Notes: generated by a model not told the origin, from the sequence alone. Positions 6,375 through 40,154 are shown, counted from the first letter of the whole stretch. The stretch is DNA of 63,980 bases, filler included, from Pelomyxa schiedti (GCA_020536535.1; 10 parts of 10 records of this genome joined end to end with filler, not necessarily neighbours in it), one strand, 5' to 3'. Program-made: numbers and translations.

Positions 6375-7346
6375 ATGAGCAGCAGTTGGACGAGTAGTAG
6401 TGGCCAATGCGGGGGTGACCCATCAACGTGCGGGTGCGAGATGCACAAGATGGTGCGGGGGGACCTGTACCGCGCCAGCGACCCGGTGCTCGTGTCGATG
6501 AGGGACATGTGCAAGTACCGCGTGGCATTGTACAACTCCCGCTGCACCTACAGACCCTCCGACCCCCCCCCGTGTCGCCATCACGACATCTACGGCGACG
6601 ACGACAATGATCAGTGGCTCGCTGCTATTGCAAAGTCCAAGACAAGTTTGGTTTTTTGTTTTTTGTTTTTTGTTTTTTGTTTTTTGTTTTTTGTTTTTTG
6701 TTTTTTGTTTTTTGTTTTTTGTTTTTTTTGCTTTTTGTTTTTGTTTTTTTTCTAACATTCGTACCAAACAGATGATCTCAGGAACATGCTTGGGAGTGTT
6801 GGGGATGGTGTGTGCATAGAGGCGCCGTTCCAGTGTGACTATGGAAAGTTCATACACTTGGGTGACAGGGTGTTTATTAACTACCAGTGTGTTATGCTGG
6901 ACACTTGTAAAATCACTCTGGGGAACGATGTACTTGTAGCGCCAGGTAAGACCAAACTTATTAGAATCAAAACGTATAAGAAGATAATAACCTGAATATT
7001 TTAGGAGTTCACTTTTATGCGGCAACACACCCAACAGACCCCCAAATTAGACTCCAGGGTTTGGAGTATGGAAAGCCAATCACAATAGGAAATAATGTGT
7101 GGATCGGAGGTAGCGCAGTAATATGCCCAGGTATACCACACTGCAATAGAAAAATGCGCCTACATTCCACTCACACCAACAAAACAAGGTGTGACAATAG
7201 GTGATAATGTAACAGTTGGAGCAGGAAGCGTGGTTGTTAAAGATGTACCAGGTAAAGACAATGAACAACACTAAAATACTCACAATTTCCTAGCCAATGT
7301 AGTTGTTGCTGGCAACCCCGCCAAGATAATCAAGAAGCTTCCGTAG
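6375..7346 (+). CDS. maa: Maltose/galactoside O-acetyltransferase (hexapeptide-repeat Maa/LacA family), about 5 exons
   Basis: [15 protein letters not shown]; [29 protein letters not shown]; YAATHP; [59 protein letters not shown]. Confidence 0.93.
6648..6752. repeat. (TTTTTTG)n microsatellite inside the first intron of the acetyltransferase gene
   Basis: Tandem T6G units visible directly. Confidence 0.9.
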
Positions 7347-7523
7347 AACAAATTCTGATTCCTAGTGAGTTCCTATCTAGTGAGGGAATTAGGTGTTGAC
7401 TCAAGCACACCTCCCTATCCGGAACTCTGTCAAAACACACTAATTCGTTTGCGTCGAGACTATCAAAAATATTTCGTTCAATAATTCACAGAAACCCTCT
7501 TATTGTTGCCGTTTCGTGGGCGA

Positions 7524-9616
7524 ATGCGTGGCTGTGCACCCATAATTGTGTTTGGTTGGTGTTGCTGGTGTTTGATTTGTGTCGCCTGGAGCAGGAGTAC
7601 GGCCACGACACTTGTGAAGACAACTACGTCGCTGTACAACGTGTACGATCCAAGTGATCCCGCAACGACTGACTGGTGCACAATATTCTTAAATATCGGT
7701 GTTATGTAACCCCTGCGTGGTTGTGAGCTTACAATTATGGGTGACATAATTGTATCGTTTTTTAAAAAAAAAAACAAATGCTGAAATGGGGATTTTTTTT
7801 CCCCCCTATAGGTATATAAATGACCACTGCTTTGCATATGGGCCTGGTGGGGTGTGGCACATGTATGGAATAACTCACACTGAATCAGCTGATCCTGAGA
7901 TGGAGGTAAGTGATTTCTTTTCTGTATATTTATCCTTTTTGTATTGTAGTTCGAAAATAAGCCAGGGTAGGTCAACTTTGCCCACGCTACTTCAAACGAT
8001 CTTACAAGTGGATGGCTAAAACAACCTTTTGCACTAGGCTCTATATTGCCTGAAACTCATGTGAGTTAAAACCACAATTTAAGTCTAAAATAATTCACTG
8101 AACAGCTTTGGGCACCATATGTCCTCTTTGAGAACAACACATACTATATGTACTATTGTGGCGGAGGCTATGACAGGACAAACTATATCATTGGCCTTGC
8201 AACATGTAATTTTTATCCGCATTTGATACTTCGTAATAAACTACAGCTGTCGACGGCTGGAAGTGGGAAAGACAAGGTACTATGTTTACTGGTGGTGTAG
8301 ATGGAAGGGACCCAATGGTATTGAAATTTGTTACGCCCGTGGGAGGGGCTTCCTACATCATCTACTATACCGGTACAAATCCCGATGAGCTCTCTGACAC
8401 AGTGAGCCATGTTACATATTACCGGACAAGCAATGACTTGTACACCTGGTCCGAGCCAGGTCACCTATTATAAAAACAAATGTGTTTACTTGCACTAAGC
8501 TGTAGTAGGTATTGCTTTTGAGGGAGGAGTGGATGGGAGCTGTGCTGGGGGACCCACAGAGTCACCATTTGTTGTTCAGCGCGGCTCAAGTTACTATTTA
8601 TTCAGTGGAGCTTGGAGTGACTACCAAGTATGTTAAGATGGCTTCTCAAATCGTTAAAATGGAAAAAAGGATACTCGAGTTTTCTTCAGCAGTGACCCAA
8701 CTTCATTTGGATCAGTTCCCCTTGGTACTGCTGTTCAAGTGGGGGAAGTAGTTTCCCATGCACCCGAAATTGTTCGCGATACTGAAGGAAACTGGTCCGA
8801 TTTCTTCTACATTTTTTTGGTTTGACGTTTACAAGGTATCTGAGCAGTGGAGGGTGGGGAGCTGGTGGGCTATGGCTCTCAGACTTAGTGTGGCTGGATG
8901 GACTAGATGACGAGCCCACTTCCATTCCAATTCCAACAGCTCCGGCTGCCCTTCCGGACTCATTCTCAACGAACTTTGAAGCTGATTGGGCTTCCTCTAG
9001 TGATGGCGGTGATGCAGAGTGGACTGTGAATCCAAGCGGTTTAGCTGGAGGTTGTGCTTTGGGCGATGCTTTCTACATGTCTGAGACTATTGCTAACAAC
9101 AATACCTTCACTTTGGACGCGGATATCACTCTCATCACCAAAGATGGCAACCCCACCTCTTCAGCAGGTACTCCTAGAAAGCCATTGTTGGTATACTCAC
9201 ACCAAATTAGGAACATGGACTCGAGATGGATCAGCTGCCGCTCTAGTAATTTCCAAATACAAAGATAGTCCGCTCTCTGATTCCTTATGCATCAACATCC
9301 ACACTGACAGTTCCGGTGGCATCAAGGTTCCTTTTCCCAACCACCACTGTGTACTTTCCCACTAAAGTTCAATAAGGTGTTCCGCTTTCCTTATGTGTCA
9401 CTGGCCAACTACGCTGTTACAATTACACAGGACACACTGTACCATCTTCGGGTCAAGATAATTCCGGGCCTTATTTATGTGTACTACTCAACCAATGGTG
9501 GGTCACTTGTACAAGTACTCAAAGTGAGTGACAGTTCTATAACTGGGGATGTGTATCTTGGCCTGAACGTGTGGCAAGGCTCCGCAATGTTCCAAAATGT
9601 GTTTTTTACGTATTAA
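7524..9616 (+). CDS. Secreted five-bladed beta-propeller glycoside hydrolase (GH32/GH43-like) with a C-terminal beta-sandwich domain, multi-exon
   Basis: Hydrophobic N-terminus; [52 protein letters not shown]. The ND/RDP/E catalytic-type motifs are in the expected order. Confidence 0.8.
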
Positions 9617-26491: not shown

Positions 26492-26593
26492 NNNNNNNNN
26501 NNNNNNNNNNNNNNNNNNNNNNNNNNNNNNNNNNNTTAATTAATTAANNNNNNNNNNNNNNNNNNNNNNNNNNNNNNNNNNNNNNNNNNNNAT

Positions 26594-29500
26594 GGAATTG
26601 TTTACAGGACAGGTGACCTTGGGAGGCTCCTCCCGAGTGGTGATGTTGAATTTCACGGGAGAGTTGACTTCCAGGTGAAGCTTCACGGTCTGAGGATTGA
26701 ATTGGGTGAGATCGAGAAAGTGATTCACAGTCATGGAATGGTGGAAGCTTGTACCGTAGTTCTCAGAGAGGACCAACCTGGTGTGAAGTTCCTTGCAGCT
26801 TATCTCGTTCCGAAGGACAAATCTCTTGCTTCAAGCAACAGTTCTTCTTCCCTTATTTCTGAAGTGAGAAACTTCCTGGAGTCAAAGTTTCCGTTGTACA
26901 TGGTCCCGAGCACCTACACTGTGATGGAACAGCTCCCACTCACTTCGACAGGCAAACTCAACATAAAGTCGTTGCCGATTCCAAGTGCTGTAGAAGCCAA
27001 TCCCTCAACATCTAGATCCCCGTTTAACGAAAGCACCATTGGCGAAGAGGAAAGGGTTCTGTTGAACTGTTGGAAGGAAACTCTTCCAAGTGGATCATCA
27101 GCACTGACTCTGGACACGGACTTCTTCCAAGCAGGTGGAGACTCCATCATGGCTCTCCAGGCGGCATCAAAGGCACGAATGAGAGGTTTGAATGTTACAC
27201 TGAGGGATTTCTTTGAACTCAGAACTATTGGGAGGATTATTGCTGCTAAAGTGACTGTAAACCTTGTTTCATCAGATCACCACCTTCCGGACCCAAAAAT
27301 GATGATTTGTCTTCCAGCCGATGCCATTCCTGAACGTTTCCTCAGTTTATTGAAAGAGAAAGGAATCGCCGAGGACCAAGTTGAGTCTGTGTTCCCGGCA
27401 ACACCAAACCAAGTCGGGATCTTGCTTCAGTGCTTCGCTGGTGGAGATAAGGACTCCCAGCAATATGAAGAACGGGGAGGAGGACTATACAATACACAGC
27501 TACGTATTGACTATCAGGGCGATCTCGATGTTGGGTTGTTCAAGAGGGCCTGGGAAGCTGTCGTTGATGACCACCCTGCTCTCCGCTCTTCAATTCTTTT
27601 CCACGCCCCAACCACAACCGACTGTTCTGACCAAAATCCGTTTGTGCAAGTTGTTTTCAAACACGTCGACCTAGACTGGGACCAACCCGATCTGACAGGT
27701 ATTGAATCAGCAAGCAGTGGAACGCCCGATGAACGGTTGATTCAATTTACAGCCAAGATGAAGGTTGCACCTTTCGACTTTGAGAAGCCAAGCTTGCTCC
27801 GGTGTCATGTTGTCAGCCACATAGGTACAACCACTCTCGCGCCGCCATTTCGCCATACGTTCATCTGCGAAGTGCACCACGTAATCACTGACGGGTGGAG
27901 CACAGCAAACATCATCCACCAGGTCCACGAGACATACTCCTCTATGTCGTCGTCTTCTTCAAATGGGTCGCCTCCAAGACAATTGAGAGGACGCATTGTG
28001 GTTCACAACTTCATGAAGTGGCTCTCTGTAAGGGATAACAAAAAAGGAGTGCAGTACTGGGAGAAGTACTTTGATGGGTTTTCCGAACCCACTCCTCTTC
28101 CGTTTTACAGCTTGACTACCGCAATATCACCAACCAACATCAAGAACAGTGAAAAGAACATCAGCATCAAGTGCGCAAATGAATCAGCGCAGGAGGACAC
28201 ACACCAGTCGTTCCGTTTTGAGATTGGTACCACACTCACAAGGAAGGTTCACGAGTTTGCCAAGTCACACAACACAACAGTGAACGTTGTGCTGCAGCTG
28301 ACGTGGGGGCTCGTCCTGCACACACTGGCAGGGTGGTTGCACTCTGACACGTCTGACGATGCCACATTCGGCACAGTATTGTCAGGGAGGCCCGATGAAG
28401 TGGACAACATTGGTGAAGGTGTTGGCCTGTTTGTCTGCACCATACCGGTTCGTTTGAGGGTGCAAGCCAACACTTCTACAGTTGGCAGCCTCCTTGAGGA
28501 ACTCCACAGGCACATCCTTCTTGATATGACAGAACACGCCTCGTCTGTTCACCTTGGGGAAATCACACAGATTGTACGAAGGAGGCACCCAGAGGTGCAG
28601 ACTTTGTTTGAAACCCTTTTTGTATTCCAGAACTTCCCGATCCCGAGCTTCGAACAATACAGCTTGAAGGGGTTGAGTGTGACAGGTTATTCAGGGAGTG
28701 AGCAGTCACACTACCCTCTGGTTCTGACTGCTTCCCTGTCATCGCTGTCTGCAGCAAAGTGTGCCTCACTCTCACCCTCTTCCCAACACCACAAAGTCGA
28801 AGTCATCAAGTTGTGCTTTGACTACAACACGGTGATACATTCACAAGGAGACCTTTCTCGGGTGAGAGATTGCTTTGAGCATCTCCTTGGAAGCGTTGTG
28901 TCTGACCCGGTCAATGAAAGAAAGATTTCTGACCTTGACAAAGTATCACCTTCTGACAAGCAATTCCTCACAGAAATCAACACCACAAACAAAGAGTTCC
29001 CAGGAAAGGAAAAAACTGAACTTGCAGTACAGAAGGCAGTTCACTTCATGTTCGAGGAGTCTGTCTTAAAGCATGGGAGTTTGCCGGCACTGAAGTTCAA
29101 TACCAAAACAGTCACTTACGAGGAACTTAACAACAGGACCAACCAACTTGCACACTTCCTCAAATCGACACACCCCGAGGCTGTTGGGCCAGGCAAGTTC
29201 ATCCCAATCATCGCAGAGAGGTCAATCGAGCAATTCGTTGCACTTTACGGTGTTCTCAAGGCGGGAGCAGCATATGTTCCCATCGACCCGGAATCACCCC
29301 CCGACAGAATCTCCGCGATCCTCGAAGACATCTCACCTGTTTCCGTTGTCATCCTGTCACACAAGTCACTCAGATCACAGCTCCCACCTGAACAGCCGTT
29401 CCAAGTGATCTCGATTTTGGAGGATGGTGACTTGTGGAAATCGTTCCCAACAACGAATCCACCACACAACATCGAGACAGGATCAGAAGAAGTTTACGCG

Positions 29501-32500
29501 ATCTTCACGTCTGGATCGACAGGGAAACCAAAGGCAGCAGTGAATCACCACCTCGGTGTGGCAAACTTTGTGATGTGGCTCAGGGACGAATACAAACTCA
29601 CAACCGAAGACAGGATCCTCCACAAGACACCGGTCTTCTTCGACGGATGTGCCCTCGAGGTGTTTGCATCCCTCGTTTCCGGTTCATGCGTCGTGATTGC
29701 TCCTCCTGGTGCTCACCAAGATCCGGAGCAGCTCCTACAGTTGGTGAGGGACAACAGAGTCACTGTCTTGCTTCTGGTTCCAACGATGCTTCGTGAGTTC
29801 ATTTCAACCGTGGCTCTGGCAGGAAAGTGCAGATTCTCCCTGAGAGCTGTAATATCCGCAGGCGAGTCACTCCACTGGGAACTGGTCCACAGGGTGTTTG
29901 ATTGCCTTGGAAAAGACATCACGTTCCACAATCATTACGGCCCATCAGAGGCATCGTGTTGCACAACGTTCCTCGACTGCTCGGAATCGCTCAAGAATCA
30001 CCCCGAGATGGAAACCAACAACGCAGTGGTTCCACTCGGGAAGCCAATCCCGAACGTGAGGGTGGTGATCGTTGACAGGAACCTGCAACCAGTTCCGATT
30101 GGGGTTGTTGGTGAGATTTGTGTTGGGGGAGTGTCTGTTGGGAAGGGATACCTCAGCAGGCCCGAACTCACTTCTTCGAAGTTCGTGAGTGCGCCAGCGA
30201 GTGATGGAATTGTTTACAGGACAGGTGACCTTGGGAGGCTCCTCCCGAGTGGTGATGTTGAATTTCACGGGAGAGTTGACTTCCAGGTGAAGCTTCACGG
30301 TCTGAGGATTGAATTGGGTGAGATTGAAAGTACAATTCTGAAGAACGTCTCCGTTGAATCGTGTGCTGTGATCGTCAGGGAGGACACACCTGGTGTGAAG
30401 TTCCTTGCAGCTTATCTCGTTCCGAAGGACAAGTCCTCCCTCCCTTCTGCCTCCACGTCAACTTCAAGGGCAACTGTAAAAGCGGAGATCACAGCACTCC
30501 TGCAGTCGCTGCTTCCACCCTACATGGTCCCGAGCACGTTCACACTGCTTCCTCAACTTCCGCTCACACCAACTGGAAAACTGGACAGGAAAGCTCTCCC
30601 AGTTCCTGGTGCGGAACAACCATCGCCAGCTCCGAGTTTTGATGCTCTTTTACCCACTGAGGAACTTCTTGTCCAGTGCCTCAGAGATGCCCTACCGTCC
30701 GCTTTTGTGTCGGTACTAAAGTCAAATTCGGACTTCTTCAGTTCGGGTGGAACCTCACTCTACGTCATCAGAGCGGCGGAAGCAGCACGGAAGCGAGGAA
30801 TCAAACTCACCCTGAGAGACTTCTTTGAAGGGAGAACAATAAAGGGAATTGCCGCAAGAATAGGAAATTTAACACCTATGGCAGTGGTGGACAAGCAAGA
30901 ACGGCCACAAGAGATACCGTTGTCCTTCGCACAACAGAGGCTTTTCTTCCTCGACAAAATGTTTCCTGGATCAACGCAATACAACATGTGTGGGGGTGTG
31001 GAATTGGAAGGAGTCCTGGATGGCATTCTCCTCCATCAAGCACTGCGTTCTGTTGTTCTTCGCCACGAATCCCTTCGAACCCGCTTTGCGGGAGACATTA
31101 CAGCCCACCAAATCATAATTTCTGAGGAGGATGTGGATAGCTCTTTCGAAATGCAAACGGCAGTGTTTAGTACTAATGGAATCCCAAAAGAAAAGTGGCT
31201 GGAATCAATCCTTGCTCGGGAGTCGCAAAAAGTATATAACTTGCAGACAGGCCCACTCCTGAGGATGACCTTCTGCAAGGTCGATGAAGAAAAGTGTGGT
31301 CTGATTGTTTGCATGCACCACATCATCTCGGACGGTTGGTCGATGGGTGTATTCCTCAAGGACTTGACAGAAGCTTACAACAACGGTGTTGGGAGGAAAA
31401 CAACTGCATCTACCTCAAGTGCTGTTCCCCTCATTCCAAAACTCGCAGTCCAATACGTCGACTTCGCACTCTGGCAAAAGAAATTCTTGGATAGTGACAA
31501 CTTTGGGAAACAGCTTGAATACTGGCAGAAAGACCTCGAAGGTGTCACGGAGGTTGCGGCACTTCCATTGGACAGGCCAAGGACAAACAAGAGAAATTAC
31601 GAAGCCGGCACAGTCATCTACCAAGTCCCGATTGCACTTTGGCAAGAACTCGTACAGCTTGGCCAATCACACAGAACAACGCCTTTCAGCACACTCCTCG
31701 CGGTGTTCCAGGCACTCCTGCACAGATACAGCAGGATGGAAAGTGAGGGAGACATAGTAGTTGGGATTCCGACAGCCAACAGGCATTACCCTGGCGTGGA
31801 ATCGATGATTGGGTTCTTTGTCAACACACTTGTTATCAGGGTGTCTGTGGATAACAACGAGGGATTTGCATCACTCCTTGACAAAGTGAGCAGGAAGGTG
31901 ATGGCTTCACAGGGAGCGCAGGATGTCCCGTTTGACAAGGTGGTGGAAGTTGTTGGTGTGGAGAGGAGGCTGAGCGTGCAACCTCTTATTCAAGTGATGT
32001 TCACGATGGACGAGTGGAACTTGCTGGACAAGTCCACGTTCTCGATGGCAGGGGTGAAAGGAGTCAGGGAAATCCCGATGACTAAGGAAGGACTCACCAA
32101 GTTCGACCTCACACTCTCGGCCACCCAGCGGGAATCATCACTGGAACTGAACTTCGAGTTCGCCAGAGATATTCTTGACACCGAAACAGTTGAATCTATG
32201 GCGGTGTTCATGGAGATACTGATCCGGCGCGCTGTCTCTGTGCCCTCTGATCCGATCTGGAAAATTGTTTCACTTGCACCAGCAGAGGAAAGGAGAATCG
32301 AGGAGTGGAACTCCACAGCCCCTGTGGAACCGTTCAAACCACTGATGACACTTTTCGAGGAGCAAGTTGAGAAACACCCCACAGGCGTAGCACTCAAGAT
32401 GGGGAGCAAAACACTGACGTTCCACATGCTGAACTGTCAAGTCAACCAGCTCGCCAACTTCCTCATCGATAAGTACAGTATTCAACCCAACGATTTTATT

Positions 32501-34231
32501 GCAATCCTGTCGGACATATCCTTTGAGTTATTCGTGGCAATTTACGTAGTTCTCAAGTCCGGAGGAGCTTACCTTCCAATCGACTTAGACTCTCCCTCAG
32601 ACAGAATTCTATCCTTGTTAAACGATGCCAAACCCAAAGTCATCCTGATCTCCAAAAGTTCATTCCTAGACCTGATTCCTTCAAGCTGCGGAGACGAATT
32701 TCCAGTCATCAGTCTTGATGGTACTGAATACGTACACTCACCAGTCACGAATCCTCCATGCCCAATCAAGACAGGAGAGGAGAGCATTTATGTCATCCCG
32801 ACGTCTGGTTCCACTGGAATTCCGAAACTTGCAGTAACCAACCACCTCGGGGCCACCAACTATGTGCGGTGGTTTCACACAACAGACCTGCAAGGGACCG
32901 CCAGCGACCGTTGCCTCCACAAGACCCCATATTACTTCGACGCTTCCATCGGGGAGATATTCTCACTATGTGTGAGTGGGTGCACAGTCGTGCTCCCAGA
33001 GCGACCTGAACACATCAAAGATCCGGAGGAGATCCTCAAGCTGATCGTTTCAGAGAAGATCACCTTGGTGGACACGGTCCCCACTATGCTCAACGAGATA
33101 ATTTCCCTTGCTGAATCCCTGCACCTGGAACCAGATTCCATTGCTCTTAGGCACGCGATCACGGGAGGGGAGGCACTGCACTGGGAACTCGTGAGGAACT
33201 TTATGAAGGTTTTCCCGAGGACAGTCCTTGATAATCATTACGGGCCCTCCGAAACCTCATGCAGTACAACGTTCTGGACAACAGAGGAGTTCGATCCAAA
33301 GGCACCGATTCATTGGCCAACACCTCTTGGAAAACCTGTGCCGGGTGCGAAGGTGTTCCTCTTGGACAATAACCTCCACCCAGTGCCGTTTGGAAGCGTT
33401 GGCGAGATTTGCATTGGGGGGATTGCAGTTGGAAAGGGATATATCAATAGGGAACAGTTGACAGCAGAAAAGTTTGTCAATGTTCCGTTCTGTGCGGGGA
33501 AGATTTACCGGACAGGTGATTTGGGCAGAATCCTACACCGCAACGGGGAGCTCCAGTTTGTTGGAAGGATTGATTTCCAGGTAAAACTGAACGGGCTGAG
33601 GATCGAACTTGGCGGGCTTGAAAGCACACTTCACACGCACACTTGCGTGAAAGATGCAGCTGTTGTCATGAAGACCAACAGCAGAAATGGCTCAAAATAC
33701 CTTGCTGGTTACGTTGTCCCGTCACAGGACGTACTCGATGAGAAGGGAGTTGATCTCGAAGGGACACCGGCATTCACCAAAGTGGTTGTTCCAGGCCTGG
33801 AATCGGAACTCCTGGACTTCATGGCCACCAAAGTTCCGCAATATATGATCCCCAGCACCATGACATTCCTGAGCTCAATGCCCGTGAGCAGGTCCGGCAA
33901 AACAGACAGGAAGGCACTAGAGGCAATGGTCGAGGAAGAAGAAGAGCAAGAAGAAGGGGAGCAACCACCAATAACAGAGAATGAGAAGCTGGTCTGTGAT
34001 ATTTGGCAGGAGGCATTTGGATTCTCAGGTGGAATCAGGACCAACTTCTTCCATGCCGGCGGGAACTCCATTATCCTAACCAGGGTTTCCAAGATGATGC
34101 TTTCACATGGAATCCTCATCACAATGGAGCAGTTCTTCCAAGAACCAACGATCTTCGGCCTCGCCAGAATCGCCGATGAACAGCAGCAGAAACAAAAGAA
34201 TCTCCATTCACATTCTAATTCTAATACATAA
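26594..34231 (+). CDS. Multimodular non-ribosomal peptide synthetase, 5'-truncated: [A]-T-C-A-T-C-A-T
   Basis: >2500-aa open frame. T motifs FFQAGGDSI (~27130), FFSSGGTSL (~30745) and FFHAGGNSI (~34058). C motifs HHVITDG (~27875) and HHIISDG (~31316). A motifs TSGSTGKPK and TSGSTGIPK, NHYGPSE, GEIC.GG..VGKGY, YRTGD, QVKL.GLRIELG and A10 lysines. Confidence 0.97.
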   Translation, partial: GIVYRTGDLGRLLPSGDVEFHGRVDFQVKLHGLRIELGEIEKVIHSHGMVEACTVVLREDQPGVKFLAAYLVPKDKSLASSNSSSSLISEVRNFLESKFPLYMVPSTYTVMEQLPLTSTGKLNIKSLPIPSAVEANPSTSRSPFNESTIGEEERVLLNCWKETLPSGSSALTLDTDFFQAGGDSIMALQAASKARMRGLNVTLRDFFELRTIGRIIAAKVTVNLVSSDHHLPDPKMMICLPADAIPERFLSLLKEKGIAEDQVESVFPATPNQVGILLQCFAGGDKDSQQYEERGGGLYNTQLRIDYQGDLDVGLFKRAWEAVVDDHPALRSSILFHAPTTTDCSDQNPFVQVVFKHVDLDWDQPDLTGIESASSGTPDERLIQFTAKMKVAPFDFEKPSLLRCHVVSHIGTTTLAPPFRHTFICEVHHVITDGWSTANIIHQVHETYSSMSSSSSNGSPPRQLRGRIVVHNFMKWLSVRDNKKGVQYWEKYFDGFSEPTPLPFYSLTTAISPTNIKNSEKNISIKCANESAQEDTHQSFRFEIGTTLTRKVHEFAKSHNTTVNVVLQLTWGLVLHTLAGWLHSDTSDDATFGTVLSGRPDEVDNIGEGVGLFVCTIPVRLRVQANTSTVGSLLEELHRHILLDMTEHASSVHLGEITQIVRRRHPEVQTLFETLFVFQNFPIPSFEQYSLKGLSVTGYSGSEQSHYPLVLTASLSSLSAAKCASLSPSSQHHKVEVIKLCFDYNTVIHSQGDLSRVRDCFEHLLGSVVSDPVNERKISDLDKVSPSDKQFLTEINTTNKEFPGKEKTELAVQKAVHFMFEESVLKHGSLPALKFNTKTVTYEELNNRTNQLAHFLKSTHPEAVGPGKFIPIIAERSIEQFVALYGVLKAGAAYVPIDPESPPDRISAILEDISPVSVVILSHKSLRSQLPPEQPFQVISILEDGDLWKSFPTTNPPHNIETGSEEVYAIFTSGSTGKPKAAVNHHLGVANFVMWLRDEYKLTTEDRILHKTPVFFDGCALEVFASLVSGSCVVIAPPGAHQDPEQLLQLVRDNRVTVLLLVPTMLREFISTVALAGKCRFSLRAVISAGESLHWELVHRVFDCLGKDITFHNHYGPSEASCCTTFLDCSESLKNHPEMETNNAVVPLGKPIPNVRVVIVDRNLQPVPIGVVGEICVGGVSVGKGYLSRPELTSSKFVSAPASDGIVYRTGDLGRLLPSGDVEFHGRVDFQVKLHGLRIELGEIESTILKNVSVESCAVIVREDTPGVKFLAAYLVPKDKSSLPSASTSTSRATVKAEITALLQSLLPPYMVPSTFTLLPQLPLTPTGKLDRKALPVPGAEQPSPAPSFDALLPTEELLVQCLRDALPSAFVSVLKSNSDFFSSGGTSLYVIRAAEAARKRGIKLTLRDFFEGRTIKGIAARIGNLTPMAVVDKQERPQEIPLSFAQQRLFFLDKMFPGSTQYNMCGGVELEGVLDGILLHQALRSVVLRHESLRTRFAGDITAHQIIISEEDVDSSFEMQTAVFSTNGIPKEKWLESILARESQKVYNLQTGPLLRMTFCKVDEEKCGLIVCMHHIISDGWSMGVFLKDLTEAYNNGVGRKTTASTSSAVPLIPKLAVQYVDFALWQKKFLDSDNFGKQLEYWQKDLEGVTEVAALPLDRPRTNKRNYEAGTVIYQVPIALWQELVQLGQSHRTTPFSTLLAVFQALLHRYSRMESEGDIVVGIPTANRHYPGVESMIGFFVNTLVIRVSVDNNEGFASLLDKVSRKVMASQGAQDVPFDKVVEVVGVERRLSVQPLIQVMFTMDEWNLLDKSTFSMAGVKGVREIPMTKEGLTKFDLTLSATQRESSLELNFEFARDILDTETVESMAVFMEILIRRAVSVPSDPIWKIVSLAPAEERRIEEWNSTAPVEPFKPLMTLFEEQVEKHPTGVALKMGSKTLTFHMLNCQVNQLANFLIDKYSIQPNDFIAILSDISFELFVAIYVVLKSGGAYLPIDLDSPSDRILSLLNDAKPKVILISKSSFLDLIPSSCGDEFPVISLDGTEYVHSPVTNPPCPIKTGEESIYVIPTSGSTGIPKLAVTNHLGATNYVRWFHTTDLQGTASDRCLHKTPYYFDASIGEIFSLCVSGCTVVLPERPEHIKDPEEILKLIVSEKITLVDTVPTMLNEIISLAESLHLEPDSIALRHAITGGEALHWELVRNFMKVFPRTVLDNHYGPSETSCSTTFWTTEEFDPKAPIHWPTPLGKPVPGAKVFLLDNNLHPVPFGSVGEICIGGIAVGKGYINREQLTAEKFVNVPFCAGKIYRTGDLGRILHRNGELQFVGRIDFQVKLNGLRIELGGLESTLHTHTCVKDAAVVMKTNSRNGSKYLAGYVVPSQDVLDEKGVDLEGTPAFTKVVVPGLESELLDFMATKVPQYMIPSTMTFLSSMPVSRSGKTDRKALEAMVEEEEEQEEGEQPPITENEKLVCDIWQEAFGFSGGIRTNFFHAGGNSIILTRVSKMMLSHGILITMEQFFQEPTIFGLARIADEQQQKQKNLHSHSNSNT

Positions 34232-34656
34232 GCCTCCTTCTCTTCCACAGACTCAGCACACACCACGGCAATGTACCTAAGGCACCATGTGAGACATGCA
34301 TTTGTTTGTTTTTTTTTTTTTGTGAGTTTTTTCAATATAAGTTACGTTTGGGATTCTGAGAGATTTTTGAGCACTTCCTAAAGCGTTGCAAAAAAACAAG
34401 CCCCTCACCGGATATTCTCTTTTTTGTCACCCTAACTGTTAGGGGCAGAAATTCACTGAAGCCTCATCACCTCTTGAGTTTCCGGACTTCCAAAGCTTGA
34501 CCAACGCAACAGGAAAATCCAGAGACAGACGCTGGCTCTGGTTGTCTTAGCGTTCGAACAACTTCGGTGATCGTTTTTTATGCCATGATCACAGGCCAGA
34601 ACTCGGTTGAATGGCAGATTGAATTAATTTTACCGTCGCAATAATTGGCCCTGGTA

Positions 34657-37600
34657 ATGGACGATACGTTGGCGTACCCCCCGTCGCCAGCGCCCACTAT
34701 AGAATCTCCTGACTACCAAGTACCAACCCCACCACAGCAACACGAGTGCGACACCCCAAACCACCAACTGGCGCATCCCATAATGCCGTCGCCGGGTAGT
34801 GGTGCCCAATACAGCAACCATCGCAGGCACCTTCGTTCCCGCGAGCCGACCGGCGCCAACTACGCGCCACGTTCGTCCCACAATCACTTGACCAGTCACC
34901 GCCACGACGTAAACAAAAACTGTACAGCAACAACACCAGCGAAGGCAGCAGCAACAACAGCAACGCCGTCATCAGCAACACCGACCCCACGAGAACACGC
35001 TAGGCATCACGGTCACAGCCAGAGCCCCCATTCCCATAATAATCGCCACCACCGCAGCAGTGCCGCGATGTCGCGTCCGTCGAAGGGACACGCCGGGCTG
35101 CAGGTCCAGGATCAGCAGCACGAGAATGAAAGGACTCCTCCTGATAGCATTTCGTCCGACCGTTGTGTGGCTGTTATCGATGTCGACTCTGGCGACGGCG
35201 ACGCCGAGGTGGTGGGAGTACCTCCTCCCAGGAGCGCCGATCTACATGTGGTTGCTCCCCCATTTCGTCATTATGGGGCAGCCGATTTCGGTGCTCACGC
35301 CGCTTCGGCTGCGCGGACTCACGTTGCTGCGGTCAGAAGCACAGAGAGGAAGAGATGTCACAGGGACAGCGCGAGTGCGCTACAGAGGCTGCTGCTAAAT
35401 AACTTGGTGCATGAGCACACAGGTACCGCGAGCTGCGTGCGCTCGCTGTCTGCCGCGCGGTATGAAAACTGCGTCGTGTGGTGCCAGCAGGCCGCTCAGT
35501 ATCTGCAAGGGACTTTGGAGGAATCACCAGCGTCGGTCCTGTCGCCGTTCAGGCGCACCAGCCCTACACCATCACCGCCCTTGACACCCAAGCAGAGCCC
35601 CACGGACAGCACTGGGCGAGACAGCGAGAATGCCCCCATCAACACGTCTCCGCCAGCAAACCTATTTAACATCTCTGAGGACGATGATGACTCAATACTG
35701 AACTTTGATGTGATGGTTGACGTGATCAAAAATAGCACACCCATGCCAAAAAATCCTACAGAAGTGGGCGTTGCACCCACTGCGATTTCTTCAGGTGAAG
35801 CAGTTGGGCCAGGCCAGTGCACAGGGTTTCAAGTTGAAACTGTTCCCAATAGCACTCCATCTGTGGAGCATTCCTTCCCCAAAGACACTTCACCTAGCGC
35901 ACCTGAAGTAACGAGACCTGAAGGAAACCCAAGCAAGGAGGCTTGTTTCTCTGAACATCCCACCGTTCCACCTGTTACACTGCACGCTAATTGTGGCCCA
36001 CAATTCACTGAGATTCCACATACATCAATTACACCCCTCAGAAGCGCACACAAGACTGTGTCATCCCCACTGAAAGGAACTGCTCCTATTTCCTATGTGG
36101 AGAGAGCAACCCCAACTGTCAATGCTCAACCTGACAACGGACACTTCACACGTCAATTTCATGACTTAGACATTACAGGAAATCTTGCATTTGGTCGTCC
36201 CAAGAAATTGTCTTTTGACTTGACCGAACCTTCAAAGTCTGACTTGCACAACACGCGGATTTCAAACCCCACTAGGCACGTAATCGGCGGCCAGTTGAGT
36301 GTTCAAACAACTTCCATTAGCACGGGATCCAAGCATGGAATCTCCTGTCGAAAACGCGGTCAACTTGACAGGCTTTCCAATCCCTTGAGTCCTAACTCAC
36401 ACCCCGCATTGTCACCCGCGTATGCGGGATCAGAACTTCACGCGCCACACTCAAAGAGGATTAGACATTCACCAGTCTCGCCGCCACTTTCCCTGCACCC
36501 AACGTCGATTCTTTCAGAAACCAAGAAATGTGCGCTATCCAGTACAAAAGGCCAGTCGAACACTACTAAAACGGAAATATGGTTTACCAAGTATTCCCCT
36601 GTGACAGAGGTACATTCATTCACCCGAGTCTTCGACTTATCTGCACAGGAAGAATTAGTGGTCAATCCAAAGAAGGTTGCTGATGTCAAGGCATGGCTAG
36701 TAAACAGTTTTAAGAACATTGGCACTAGTTCGGTACACTCCCACTGAAGTTTTTTCCCCTCATCACTCATCCTAGGGAAAACGCATGTTGTGTCTCACTG
36801 GCCCATCTGGCTCTGGTAAAACTGCTATGGTACACATACTATCAAAGTCCGTAAAAGCGGTACCATGTGAGTGGGTGCTTCCTTCATATGACACGACATT
36901 GAATTCGGATTGTATAACCGAGGATTACACTCCAGTCATCGAGCGGTTTATGGGGTGGCTGAGAAACACTTCCCGGTAGGTGTGGCTCTCTAACTATGTT
37001 AAATGTTTGAGGTTAATTTAAAAGTAATTTTTCTTCCTCCATAAATAGAACGCGTGATCTTTTGTCTGGGGCAGGGCGTAAAATTCTGGTAGTGGAAGAT
37101 TTCCCTCACATTGCAGGGCTACCACAGGCCAATAAACTGAGAGAAGCACTACGCTGGTAAAAATATTTTTCGTGGTTCCTTCAATTTTACAGCACACAGG
37201 TTTCTGCAATTCGGAAGAATGCCTCTGGTCTTCATCATGAATGATGTTTACAGTTCAATTGAATCGTCATCTTTACTGTACGAAGTCGTCTCTCGTGAGT
37301 TCTTTTCAAATCCTGGAGTCAGTGTAATAAGGTCGCCTGTCAAACCACCTTGACGCTTGTTAAGCTTTACTCCAGTGTCAATCCAGTGACAGCAACAATG
37401 ATGGAGAAAATACTTAGGCGGGTGGCACTCATGGAAGGGTTTCCCCAGATCTCCAATACGGTTCTTTCGATGCTAGCAGAAAACAGGTCTAGCTTTTGCA
37501 AGATACAACCCCTGTAACAAAACTGCAGTGGTGGTGATATCAGAACAGCTATTAATGCATTACAGTTCTACTGTTGTTGCAGTCAAGAATACCTCTCCCC

Positions 37601-38547
37601 CCATCCTGTAAATAAGTCCTCAATTGGGAATCGGGACCAATCTCTTAACCTCCTTCACGCAGTTGGGAAGATTATCTATTGCAAACGTATAGCACTTCTC
37701 CATGCCTACGCTTCTTATTTGTTGCAGGGATTCCGCAGTCCCAGTTACCTTCCAAACGAAAGCCTATGCACGCAAACTTCAGGCTCCCATTGAAGAACAG
37801 TGCTTCTGCTGTATTAGAGCGAGTAACATTAAAACCCAGAAAACAATCCCAACCAACAAAACAACCAGGTCTGTGCTCCATCAGATATCTTCACCGCGTT
37901 TGTCCACGAGAATTACTTGGGAACTTTTTCTGATATAGATGACATCGCCAGCTCACTCGAATTTTTGTCTTTCTCGGACACATTGGAGAAGAGATCTTTT
38001 GTAAATGCTGTTTATAGTCCTCTTCCTCATTTACCTTTGTGCAGGATATGCCTGTTTTGACAACTTACTCCGCGCAAGTTGCTTCACAGGGGTTTTTATT
38101 TTTCAATAACCACCACATTAATAAGGTTCGTAGGGAAATTTTGGCTGTTTGTAACCTCTTTTAGTCTTACAAACAAATGGAAAAGCCACAACAATTTACT
38201 GCCTTGAAGAATGCGGCAGCGAATTCAATGTCCTTGAAGCAACTTTGTTATTCTGTGTGCACGCAGCAAATACAAACTGGAGCAAGGGGCGCCGATGACT
38301 ACCGGTTAGAATGCTTAATATCCTTCAATTTTTCTTACACCTAACCAGGTATCCCGATTGGTTGACAAGCGGCGCATCACATTCCATGGAAGTACTTCCA
38401 TGGGTCCGTGCTATGTCACTCCTTCAGATGAAAAACAACCAAGTAAAGGCTCAACAACCAACGAAGAGCTATGAGGAAATTCTATTTGGAACAAATCACA
38501 CTTTCCTTGGAGGACTGTGTGACTACTTTAGAACCAAGAAACTATGA
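34657..38547 (+). CDS. RAD17: Checkpoint clamp loader RAD17/Rad24 with a long low-complexity N-terminal extension, multi-exon; 3' end approximate
   Basis: WFTKYSP..EELVVNPKKVADVKAWL; LTGPSGSGKT; ILVVEDFP; GGDIRTAINALQF; RDQSLNLLHAVGKIIYCKR; HENYLE. Confidence 0.9.
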
Positions 38548-38781: not shown

Positions 38782-39117
38782 CAACCCAAACAAAAAAAAA
38801 GGGGGTAATTTTCAATGGAACACCACCACGAAGTCATAACCTTACCCAGGACCAATGTTGCCACTACAAGTCACACTCCTTCCCCGTGGTGGATGCAAAG
38901 TTTCATGCCCGAGCATCTTGTTAAGAAACCAGTTTTTTCTCGGTGTGCTGAATTGTGGGAGGCCTGCTTCTTGTATCCCACAATCCGGCGCACCGGGAAA
39001 AAACTGGTTTTTTAAGAAGAGGCTCGGAATGTCTTTTTCGGAGCCATCACGGGGAAGGAGTGTGACTGCGTGGTGGTTTTCCATTGAAAATTACCCCCTT
39101 TTTTTTTGTTTGGGTTG
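38782..39117. mobile_element. Foldback/MITE-like element made of two long imperfect inverted arms
   Basis: Left caacccaaac-A9-gggggtaattttcaatggaa..aattgtggga is mirrored by tcccacaat..ttccattgaaaattaccccc-T9-gtttgggttg. No target-site duplication seen. Confidence 0.75.
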
Positions 39118-39980: not shown

Positions 39981-40154
39981 CCCAAAAAAAAAAGGGGGTA
40001 ATTTTCAATGGAACACCACCACGAAGTCAGAACCTGACCCAGGACCAATGTTGCCACTACAAGTCACACTCCTTCCCTGTGGTGGATCCAAATCTTTCAC
40101 AAAGTGCCTCTTGTTAAGAAACCGGTTTTTTCTCGGTGTGCCGAATTGTGGGAT
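39981..40154. mobile_element. Third copy of the same arm (putative TIR) followed by different internal sequence
   Basis: Direct repeat of about 38790-38960 with substitutions. Confidence 0.7.

Follow-up and report, generated by a model that had tools for sequence, protein, structure and literature searches.

Lipopeptide non-ribosomal peptide synthetases (NRPSs) with a T0-C start are found in fungi and include emericellamide EasA, echinocandin EcdA, verlamelin VlmS and the synthetase of BII-rafflesfungin (PMC6518819). In these enzymes, a first carrier (T) without an adenylation (A) domain takes an acyl group, which the next condensation (C) domain joins to the first amino acid. The acyl group reaches T0 through a stand-alone AMP-ligase (EcdI, VlmC). 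In the emericellamide system, EasC is the separate acyltransferase that loads T0. An NRPS gene of the anaerobic amoeba Pelomyxa schiedti is predicted to start in the same manner, but with an acyltransferase fused before T0, with C domains of the bacterial LCL and DCL types, and with no terminal CT domain. Given the fused loader, the bacterial C types and the missing CT, it would work like the fungal T0 family without being a member of it.

The putative fused acyltransferase resembles the SAT domain of fungal non-reducing polyketide synthases (PKSs) (PF16073; PMC10401856) in its N-terminal position, a Pfam score above the cut-off, a GxSxG/GxCxG motif and a presumed role in starter loading. Sequence similarity to fungal SAT is, however, remote (E 1e-7 to 1e-10), and whereas the fungal enzymes are arranged as SAT-KS-AT-PT-ACP, in Pelomyxa SAT is followed by T-C-A and the protein lacks a ketosynthase. 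Bacterial lipopeptide NRPSs (surfactin, tyrocidine and microcystin type) share with the Pelomyxa protein the C-A-T order, LCL and DCL domains, a GGDS carrier before DCL and 33–43% identity, and the closest solved structures are LgrA, McyB and TycB. In these bacterial systems, synthesis begins at a starter C domain or a fatty acyl-AMP ligase and finishes at a TE or R domain. The Pelomyxa gene has neither such a start nor such an end; it also lacks an epimerase (E) before DCL and has introns in its 5′ part.

Bacterial-type modules in eukaryotic nuclear genomes are likewise seen among the horizontally acquired NRPS/PKS genes of bdelloid rotifers (PMC11258130) and springtails (PMC10531068), and among algal and protist candidates (PMC10794256). 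Low identity to bacteria, lineage-specific expansion and the frequent absence of a TE are common to these cases and Pelomyxa, which differs in its lineage, the anaerobic Archamoebae with endosymbionts. A further difference is the expression evidence for defense that exists for the rotifer genes (PMC11258130). Pelomyxa is not mentioned in PMC10531068 or PMC10794256, nor is a SAT-started NRPS in the latter. The main texts of both Pelomyxa genome papers (one being PMC8887013) do not mention NRPSs, and our literature searches found no description of Pelomyxa NRPSs. Mastigamoeba was rejected as a published precedent, as PMC8136499 contains no NRPS or PKS term. Microbial eukaryotes and small animals are already known to have bacterial-type NRPSs; what is new is the lineage and the SAT-T0 starter architecture.

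Open reading frame and domain content

The window (the whole stretch of P. schiedti DNA that was analyzed, 63,980 nt) includes a 13.9-kb contig at 26592–40485, at the left edge of which an NRPS frame is already open. The frame runs from 26594 to a TAA at 34229–34231 (7638 nt, 2545 amino acids, a single stop) and corresponds to KAH3732419.1, automatically labeled "non-ribosomal peptide synthetase [Pelomyxa schiedti]" (contig JAHLWZ010001181.1, assembly GCA_020536535.1). Since the frame is cut at the 5′ contig edge, the NRPS stretch here is a gene fragment. Its features and those downstream are as follows:

26592..26712, + strand: 121 nt identical to 30204-30324; equals the largest assembly k-mer and marks a repeat-caused break
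26594..34231, + strand: NRPS open reading frame, [A C-terminal part]-T1-C(DCL)-A2-T2-C(LCL)-A3-T3-stop (GenBank KAH3732419.1)
26597..26974, + strand: C-terminal part of A1, motifs A7-A10, catalytic Lys present
27050..27244, + strand: carrier T1, GGDS type
27371..28828, + strand: condensation domain, DCL clade, HHVITDG at 27875; no epimerase in front, no second His motif of the dual-E/C kind
29102..30598, + strand: adenylation domain A2, pocket code DGLLIAHCCK, the same as for A1 in KAH3766394.1
29893..30324, + strand: putative 432-nt perfect repeat common to A1 and A2
30659..30856, + strand: carrier T2 (GGTS)
30902..32230, + strand: condensation domain, LCL clade, HHIISDG at 31316
32405..33919, + strand: adenylation domain A3, pocket code DAGDIGHCSK, acidic pocket floor
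33983..34162, + strand: terminal carrier T3 (GGNS), followed by a tail of only 22 residues
34232..34349, + strand: probable 3′ UTR, with the ends of RNA contigs at 34283 and 34349
34657..38547, + strand: RAD17, a spliced host housekeeping gene outside the pathway, which anchors the NRPS to the nuclear genome

Pfam identified two AMP-binding, three AMP-binding_C, two Condensation and three PP-binding domains in the KAH3732419.1 frame; with NCBIfam, this amounts to two full C-A-T modules and the end of a third in one polypeptide. Both C domains carry the HHxxxDG motif (27875 and 31316), the carrier serines lie in GGDS, GGTS and GGNS, and motifs A3, A4, A5, A7, A8 and A10 are found in both complete A domains. 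An earlier reading of the locus from sequence alone (the sequence-only reading) had described more than 7.6 kb of uninterrupted frame with intact A, T and C motifs, which agrees with the single stop and intact core motifs found here. The best reference-pool matches to the pocket codes agree at 4–5 of 9 positions, none of them close. The A3 code presumably specifies a basic substrate, such as Orn or Lys, although this is a guess. TE, R and CT release domains, which many but not all NRPSs have, were not detected in the frame using Pfam. The sequence-only reading had not mentioned this absence, nor the DCL-type C domain lacking an epimerase, nor the predicted SAT-T0 start.

Two features stressed in the sequence-only reading need qualification. 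The gene was called intronless, in a genome with 7.4 introns per gene (PMC8887013); this holds for the visible NRPS body but not for the gene, as introns interrupt the SAT region of the probable 5′ part and of both paralogues. S/T-rich linkers were taken as a sign of domestication, but S and T are enriched (33–56% S+T) in short low-complexity insertions within the A-subdomain and C loops, and the inter-domain linkers are mostly not S/T-rich (4–26%, compared with 15% for the whole protein). The introns of the 5′ part are a better sign. The GenBank start and a 62-nt intron modeled at the contig edge were rejected, since both cut through the in-frame motifs A7-A8.

The probable 5′ part and a SAT-started gene family

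The 5′ end of the piece is an assembly break, as its first 121 nt are identical to 30204-30324, and 121 is the largest k used by the assembler (k-mers up to 121; PMC8887013). A matching break is present in KAH3766394.1 (P0272, JAHLWZ010000150.1, locus L003), which encodes SAT-T-C-A and stops at a 100-N gap. At the DNA level its A domain matches A2 at 93% identity, and the final 121 nt of KAH3766394.1 exactly reproduce 29893-30013. Hence, KAH3766394.1 stops after the first 121 nt of the 432-nt repeat, and the window contig starts with the last 121 nt. These exact overlaps on both sides indicate that the two free ends flank one 432-nt repeat (29893-30324) common to A1 and A2. Joining KAH3766394.1 to the window piece yields a whole gene predicted to read SAT-T0-C(LCL)-A1-T1-C(DCL)-A2-T2-C(LCL)-A3-T3, a reconstruction we consider quite likely based on these ends, and one that mends two GenBank models splitting one probable gene.

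In a contig from DNA run X2, the left side carries KAH3766394-type letters and the right side those of the contig start. This contig is a mosaic of both repeat copies and hence no independent proof of the join, and no read or contig phased the 432-nt repeat. Contigs at 90–95% likeness on this stretch (63 and 54 in the two DNA runs) gathered at conserved motifs and point to further unassembled modules; other unassembled paralogues could share the repeat. The genes at loci L001 and L004 were rejected as 5′ partners, as their ends lack the overlap (9 and 22 nt only).

Several other observations concern the assembly around these genes. Past the 100-N gap, L003 (14487-15203) contains 617 nt that are unrelated to NRPSs and do not match the window piece; the 13.9-kb contig may belong in this gap, or the scaffold join may be wrong. 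One contig in run X1 links 33609 to a stretch like 30349 via 33 other letters, and is probably the end of a further paralogous A domain rather than a rearrangement. L001 contains exact 121-nt direct repeats in two pairs (7083-7424 and 7812-8153), with a spacing of 221 nt; these are a scaffold-gap signature at k = 121, and such repeats are artefacts in this assembly. The A1 and A2 DNA (29123-30324 versus L003 13581-14486) is nearly identical except for a patch at 29809-29851, whereas the C and T domains on either side are only distant relatives, a pattern that points to recent gene conversion between modules.

A search with the SAT region, limited to proteins 0.55–1.75 times the query length, retrieved exactly three proteins, all from P. 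schiedti and 43–46% identical: P0272, P0391 and P0015 (KAH3764772.1). P0015 has the order SAT-T-C-A-T-C and P0391 SAT-T-C, both being cut by contig ends. The SAT part of each gene contains five or six GT-AG introns (five in KAH3766394.1) and the NRPS body is largely uninterrupted; introns modeled near contig ends look like prediction artefacts. The SAT paralogues sit among eukaryotic genes. Pfam PF16073 scored 32 and 41 bits against a cut-off of 22.8, with only a weak precomputed match for P0391. The canonical SAT motif is GxSxG/GxCxG (PMC10401856), and the three proteins retain GYSAG, GYSAG and GYCGG, together with a downstream His. Atlas neighbors of the SAT region comprise fungal SAT and bacterial AT proteins; the top cluster is from Ascomycota, and actinobacterial SAT/AT clusters score nearly as high. 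An AlphaFold model built on a three-sequence alignment reached a pLDDT of 37 and did not confirm the SAT fold; matches of the SAT region to AT proteins were only weak. Short exact SAT-T patterns, a weak test, found nothing in JGI metagenomes or GTDB genomes, and our limited searches found no SAT-T-C genes outside P. schiedti.

The sequence-only reading had proposed looking for paralogous NRPSs and a phosphopantetheinyl transferase (PPTase); the genome has three SAT-T-C genes, including KAH3766394.1, and a candidate PPTase in KAH3761155.1, which is annotated as a 4′-phosphopantetheinyl transferase (LYS5 label; PMC10579272 supplement). At L001 (1-8788), KAH3764772.1 adjoins an MFS transporter gene and lies near a class III aminotransferase gene, which is the only hint of a biosynthetic cluster seen. 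A further protein labeled as an NRPS, Pelo_9594 (PMC8887013 supplementary file 1), has ketosynthase motifs at its start and the PTS1 signal SKL at its end; these features suggest a peroxisomal PKS-NRPS hybrid, and a possible acyl donor or partner.

Nuclear location, transcription and origin of the modules

RAD17 starts at 34657, 425 nt past the NRPS stop, with no gap between the genes. Searched exon by exon, its pieces match Pfam Rad17 (E 2.5e-6 for 36776-36976) and RAD24_helical, short GT-AG introns are visible, and the NCBI model is a 1114-residue Rad17 over 3891 nt. The sequence-only reading had placed the NRPS about 430 bp upstream of an intron-containing RAD17 on a gap-free contig, had called for reads across the junction, and had argued against a bacterial contaminant. 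The first point agrees with the 425-nt spacer and the introns. For the second, one 6554-nt unitig from 31780 spans the stop and the spacer and reaches into RAD17 with 0 differences in both single-cell DNA runs (X1 and X2), which probably come from the sample that gave the assembly, so that the unitig tests the assembly and not the strain. The third is upheld by this unitig, by intron-bearing paralogues among eukaryotic genes, and by the lack of any prokaryotic match above ~43% identity.

Prokaryotic best identities were 36–37% over a module, up to 43% per A domain, and 42% in metagenomes. Pattern scans with the A domains yielded only relatives at 23–42%, none of 80 with a SAT-like stretch, and the ten best loci checked contained long open frames. 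Among 50%-identity representatives, only very long NRPSs at 29–35% identity were recovered, with no close relative, and no peptide synthetase appears in the accessible part of the endosymbiont annotation tables. GC content is 0.50 for the NRPS and 0.54 for RAD17 exon 1. Most telling are the close relatives with introns, located among eukaryotic genes in the same assembly. Contamination is rejected. The NRPS is a real nuclear gene of an intron-rich protist, and it is transcribed. As previously noted for this locus, no tailoring gene was found downstream of it, nor a transporter gene.

RAD17 begins with one long first exon (34657-36540) encoding an N-terminal extension of ~630 residues, rich in Pro, Ser, Thr and His and without a Pfam match. 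Beyond the gene lies a 336-nt foldback element (38782-39117) that looks like a non-autonomous DNA transposon; its terminal inverted repeats are 66 nt long and 89% complementary, and a 52-nt inverted pair lies further in. A partial second copy, 91% identical, follows 1193 nt on (39985-40153).

RNA contigs cover 32632-34283 and 32582-34349 almost free of differences, with shorter ones over upstream parts, answering an earlier call for expression evidence in respect of the 3′ part of the NRPS; these contigs derive from one study and denote presence in RNA libraries only, not level, strand or a full-length transcript. No RNA contigs were found over 34473-35050, from the spacer into RAD17. One RNA contig has KAH3766394.1 letters and another continues into the end of the L004 gene; hence, three gene pieces are represented in RNA. 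Native tailing cannot be read from these contigs, since a 2023 protocol of the same group adds poly(A) tails in vitro.

Using subtype profiles built from bacterial C domains sorted by position, the first C domain (27371-28828) scored 254 bits for DCL, 144 for LCL and 58 for E, and its closest solved structure is McyB. It is separated from T1 by ~40 residues, with no E domain between them. In bacteria, carriers of the GGDS type precede epimerase domains (D in 84 of the 92 pre-E carriers of the reference pool). The E-less DCL arrangement is not unique to the window, as 43 bacterial C domains in the pool share it. A dual E/C identity was rejected for this domain, which has no second HH-x-GD motif and did not group with Dual (one Dual reference). 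The second C domain (30902-32230) begins with IPLSFAQQRLFFL, as expected from the earlier call of an LCL-type start, scores 420 bits for LCL and falls inside the LCL clade (support 99). LCL domains, and a GGDS carrier before DCL, follow the bacterial pattern, whereas fungal C domains are mostly of other subtypes and fungal DCL follows a GGHS carrier (PMC10212144).

In a quick C-domain tree (SH-aLRT only; 104 sampled prokaryotic references, without starter-C or eukaryotic rows), four amoeba LCL domains, those behind T0 among them, group as a single clade within bacterial LCL (support 100), and two amoeba DCL domains form one clade inside DCL (support 100). Likewise, four amoeba A domains form one clade on a long stem (support 100) in a FastTree analysis with prokaryotic references. 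Protein searches named no eukaryotes other than Pelomyxa among the top matches. A horizontal origin of the NRPS modules, as claimed earlier, is likely: the C domains are of bacterial subtypes and sit inside the LCL and DCL clades of these prokaryote-only trees, which resolve no donor. The data would fit a scenario in which a bacterial NRPS was acquired once, long ago, bringing one or more LCL modules and one (E)-DCL module, after which E was lost, SAT was fused on and duplication took place within the lineage.

Competing explanations and a proposed assembly line

We regard the window piece as the 3′ two-thirds of a functional nuclear NRPS gene with KAH3766394.1 as its 5′ part, probably encoding an acyl-primed line of bacterial-origin modules, and put the probability of this reading at roughly 0.6. 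It is also conceivable, if unlikely, that the NRPS is genuine and nuclear but continues into a different unassembled paralogue at its 5′ end, or has more than three tandem modules, in which case a longer product, or one with another start, would be expected. Against this, each free end overlaps the same repeat by exactly k = 121 nt, the ends of the other two SAT genes fail to match it (9 and 22 nt), and only two letter sets were seen to the right of 30324. Nonetheless, the repeat is unphased, there are many paralogous fragments at 90–95%, two further SAT-started genes break inside their bodies, and the graph permits more than one repeat of the T1-C-A2 unit. Far less probable, to the point of being negligible, is a chimera or contaminant, in which amplification or assembly joined the NRPS of an endosymbiont or co-cultured prokaryote to RAD17. 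Although chimeras arise in single-cell amplified DNA, the NRPS body has no introns and one study is behind all runs, the junction unitig is identical in two DNA runs, relatives with 71–93% DNA identity have spliceosomal introns, the endosymbiont tables contain no peptide synthetase in their accessible part, and 36–43% is the best prokaryotic identity.

Other explanations accept the gene but question the source of its modules or its activity. Old eukaryotic inheritance, or a fungal source, would be in keeping with a SAT family best known from fungal polyketide synthases, a top Atlas cluster from Ascomycota and T0-C starts typical of fungal lipopeptide NRPSs (PMC6518819), and the long stems in the trees could hide a donor. 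We consider it improbable, as the C domains sit within the LCL and DCL clades of bacteria, other subtypes predominate among fungal C domains, in which DCL follows GGHS (PMC10212144), only Pelomyxa was named among eukaryotes in the top protein-search matches, and actinobacterial SAT/AT clusters are almost equal in score. Slightly less probable again is a transcribed but incomplete or decaying line, having lost its E and release domains, that makes no product or is a mere acyl or aminoacyl donor. A reading frame of 7.6 kb without a stop or frameshift, with every catalytic motif kept, speaks against decay. TE, R and CT are all absent, but NRPS candidates of algae and protists commonly lack a TE (PMC10794256), and the E-type carrier and DCL domain without an E domain, which might also suggest loss, recur in a paralogue at 43–47% identity and in the 43 bacterial pool domains. 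The lack of cluster genes alongside remains in favor of decay.

If the window piece and KAH3766394.1 form one functional gene, as we prefer, the host PPTase, which is annotated, would prime four carriers. SAT, judging from its family and intact motif, would take up an acyl group on its GxSxG serine, with acyl-CoA or a polyketide synthase carrier as the source, and pass it to T0, from which the first C domain of the line would join it to amino acid 1. As their pocket codes are identical, A1 and A2 probably add the same residue twice, and A3 would probably add a basic residue. The DCL-clade domain, its epimerase lost, would most simply act as an ordinary condensation domain on an L-donor. Because no release domain is encoded, release of the acyl-tripeptide from T3 would occur in trans, with a separate thioesterase, a partner synthetase or a free-standing C domain as the possible agent. 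The modules would be an ancient acquisition from bacteria that later multiplied within the amoeba lineage, A1 and A2 having been homogenized recently. The likely product, as predicted from domain content, is an N-acyl tripeptide, and by analogy with the rotifer NRPS/PKS genes (PMC11258130) its most likely use would be as a membrane- or surface-active, antibacterial or signaling lipopeptide against prey bacteria, competitors or endosymbionts. Symbiont control, defense and metal chelation had been put forward in the sequence-only reading as possible roles.

Multimodular NRPSs are hardly known from amoebozoans, and we found no paper on one in an anaerobic amoeba. More tentatively, it is possible that Pelomyxa evolved a lipopeptide line of its own by fusing SAT to bacterial NRPS modules, as a family with A domains shuffled by gene conversion, whose products may manage intracellular bacteria, the methanogen or prey. 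A SAT-T0-C start would add to starter-C domains and acyl-AMP ligases another way for a single protein to begin a lipopeptide, and would be of interest for NRPS enzymology and engineering. As a host-encoded, expressed family in a host of three intracellular prokaryotes, these genes are candidates for chemical control of symbiosis or prey.
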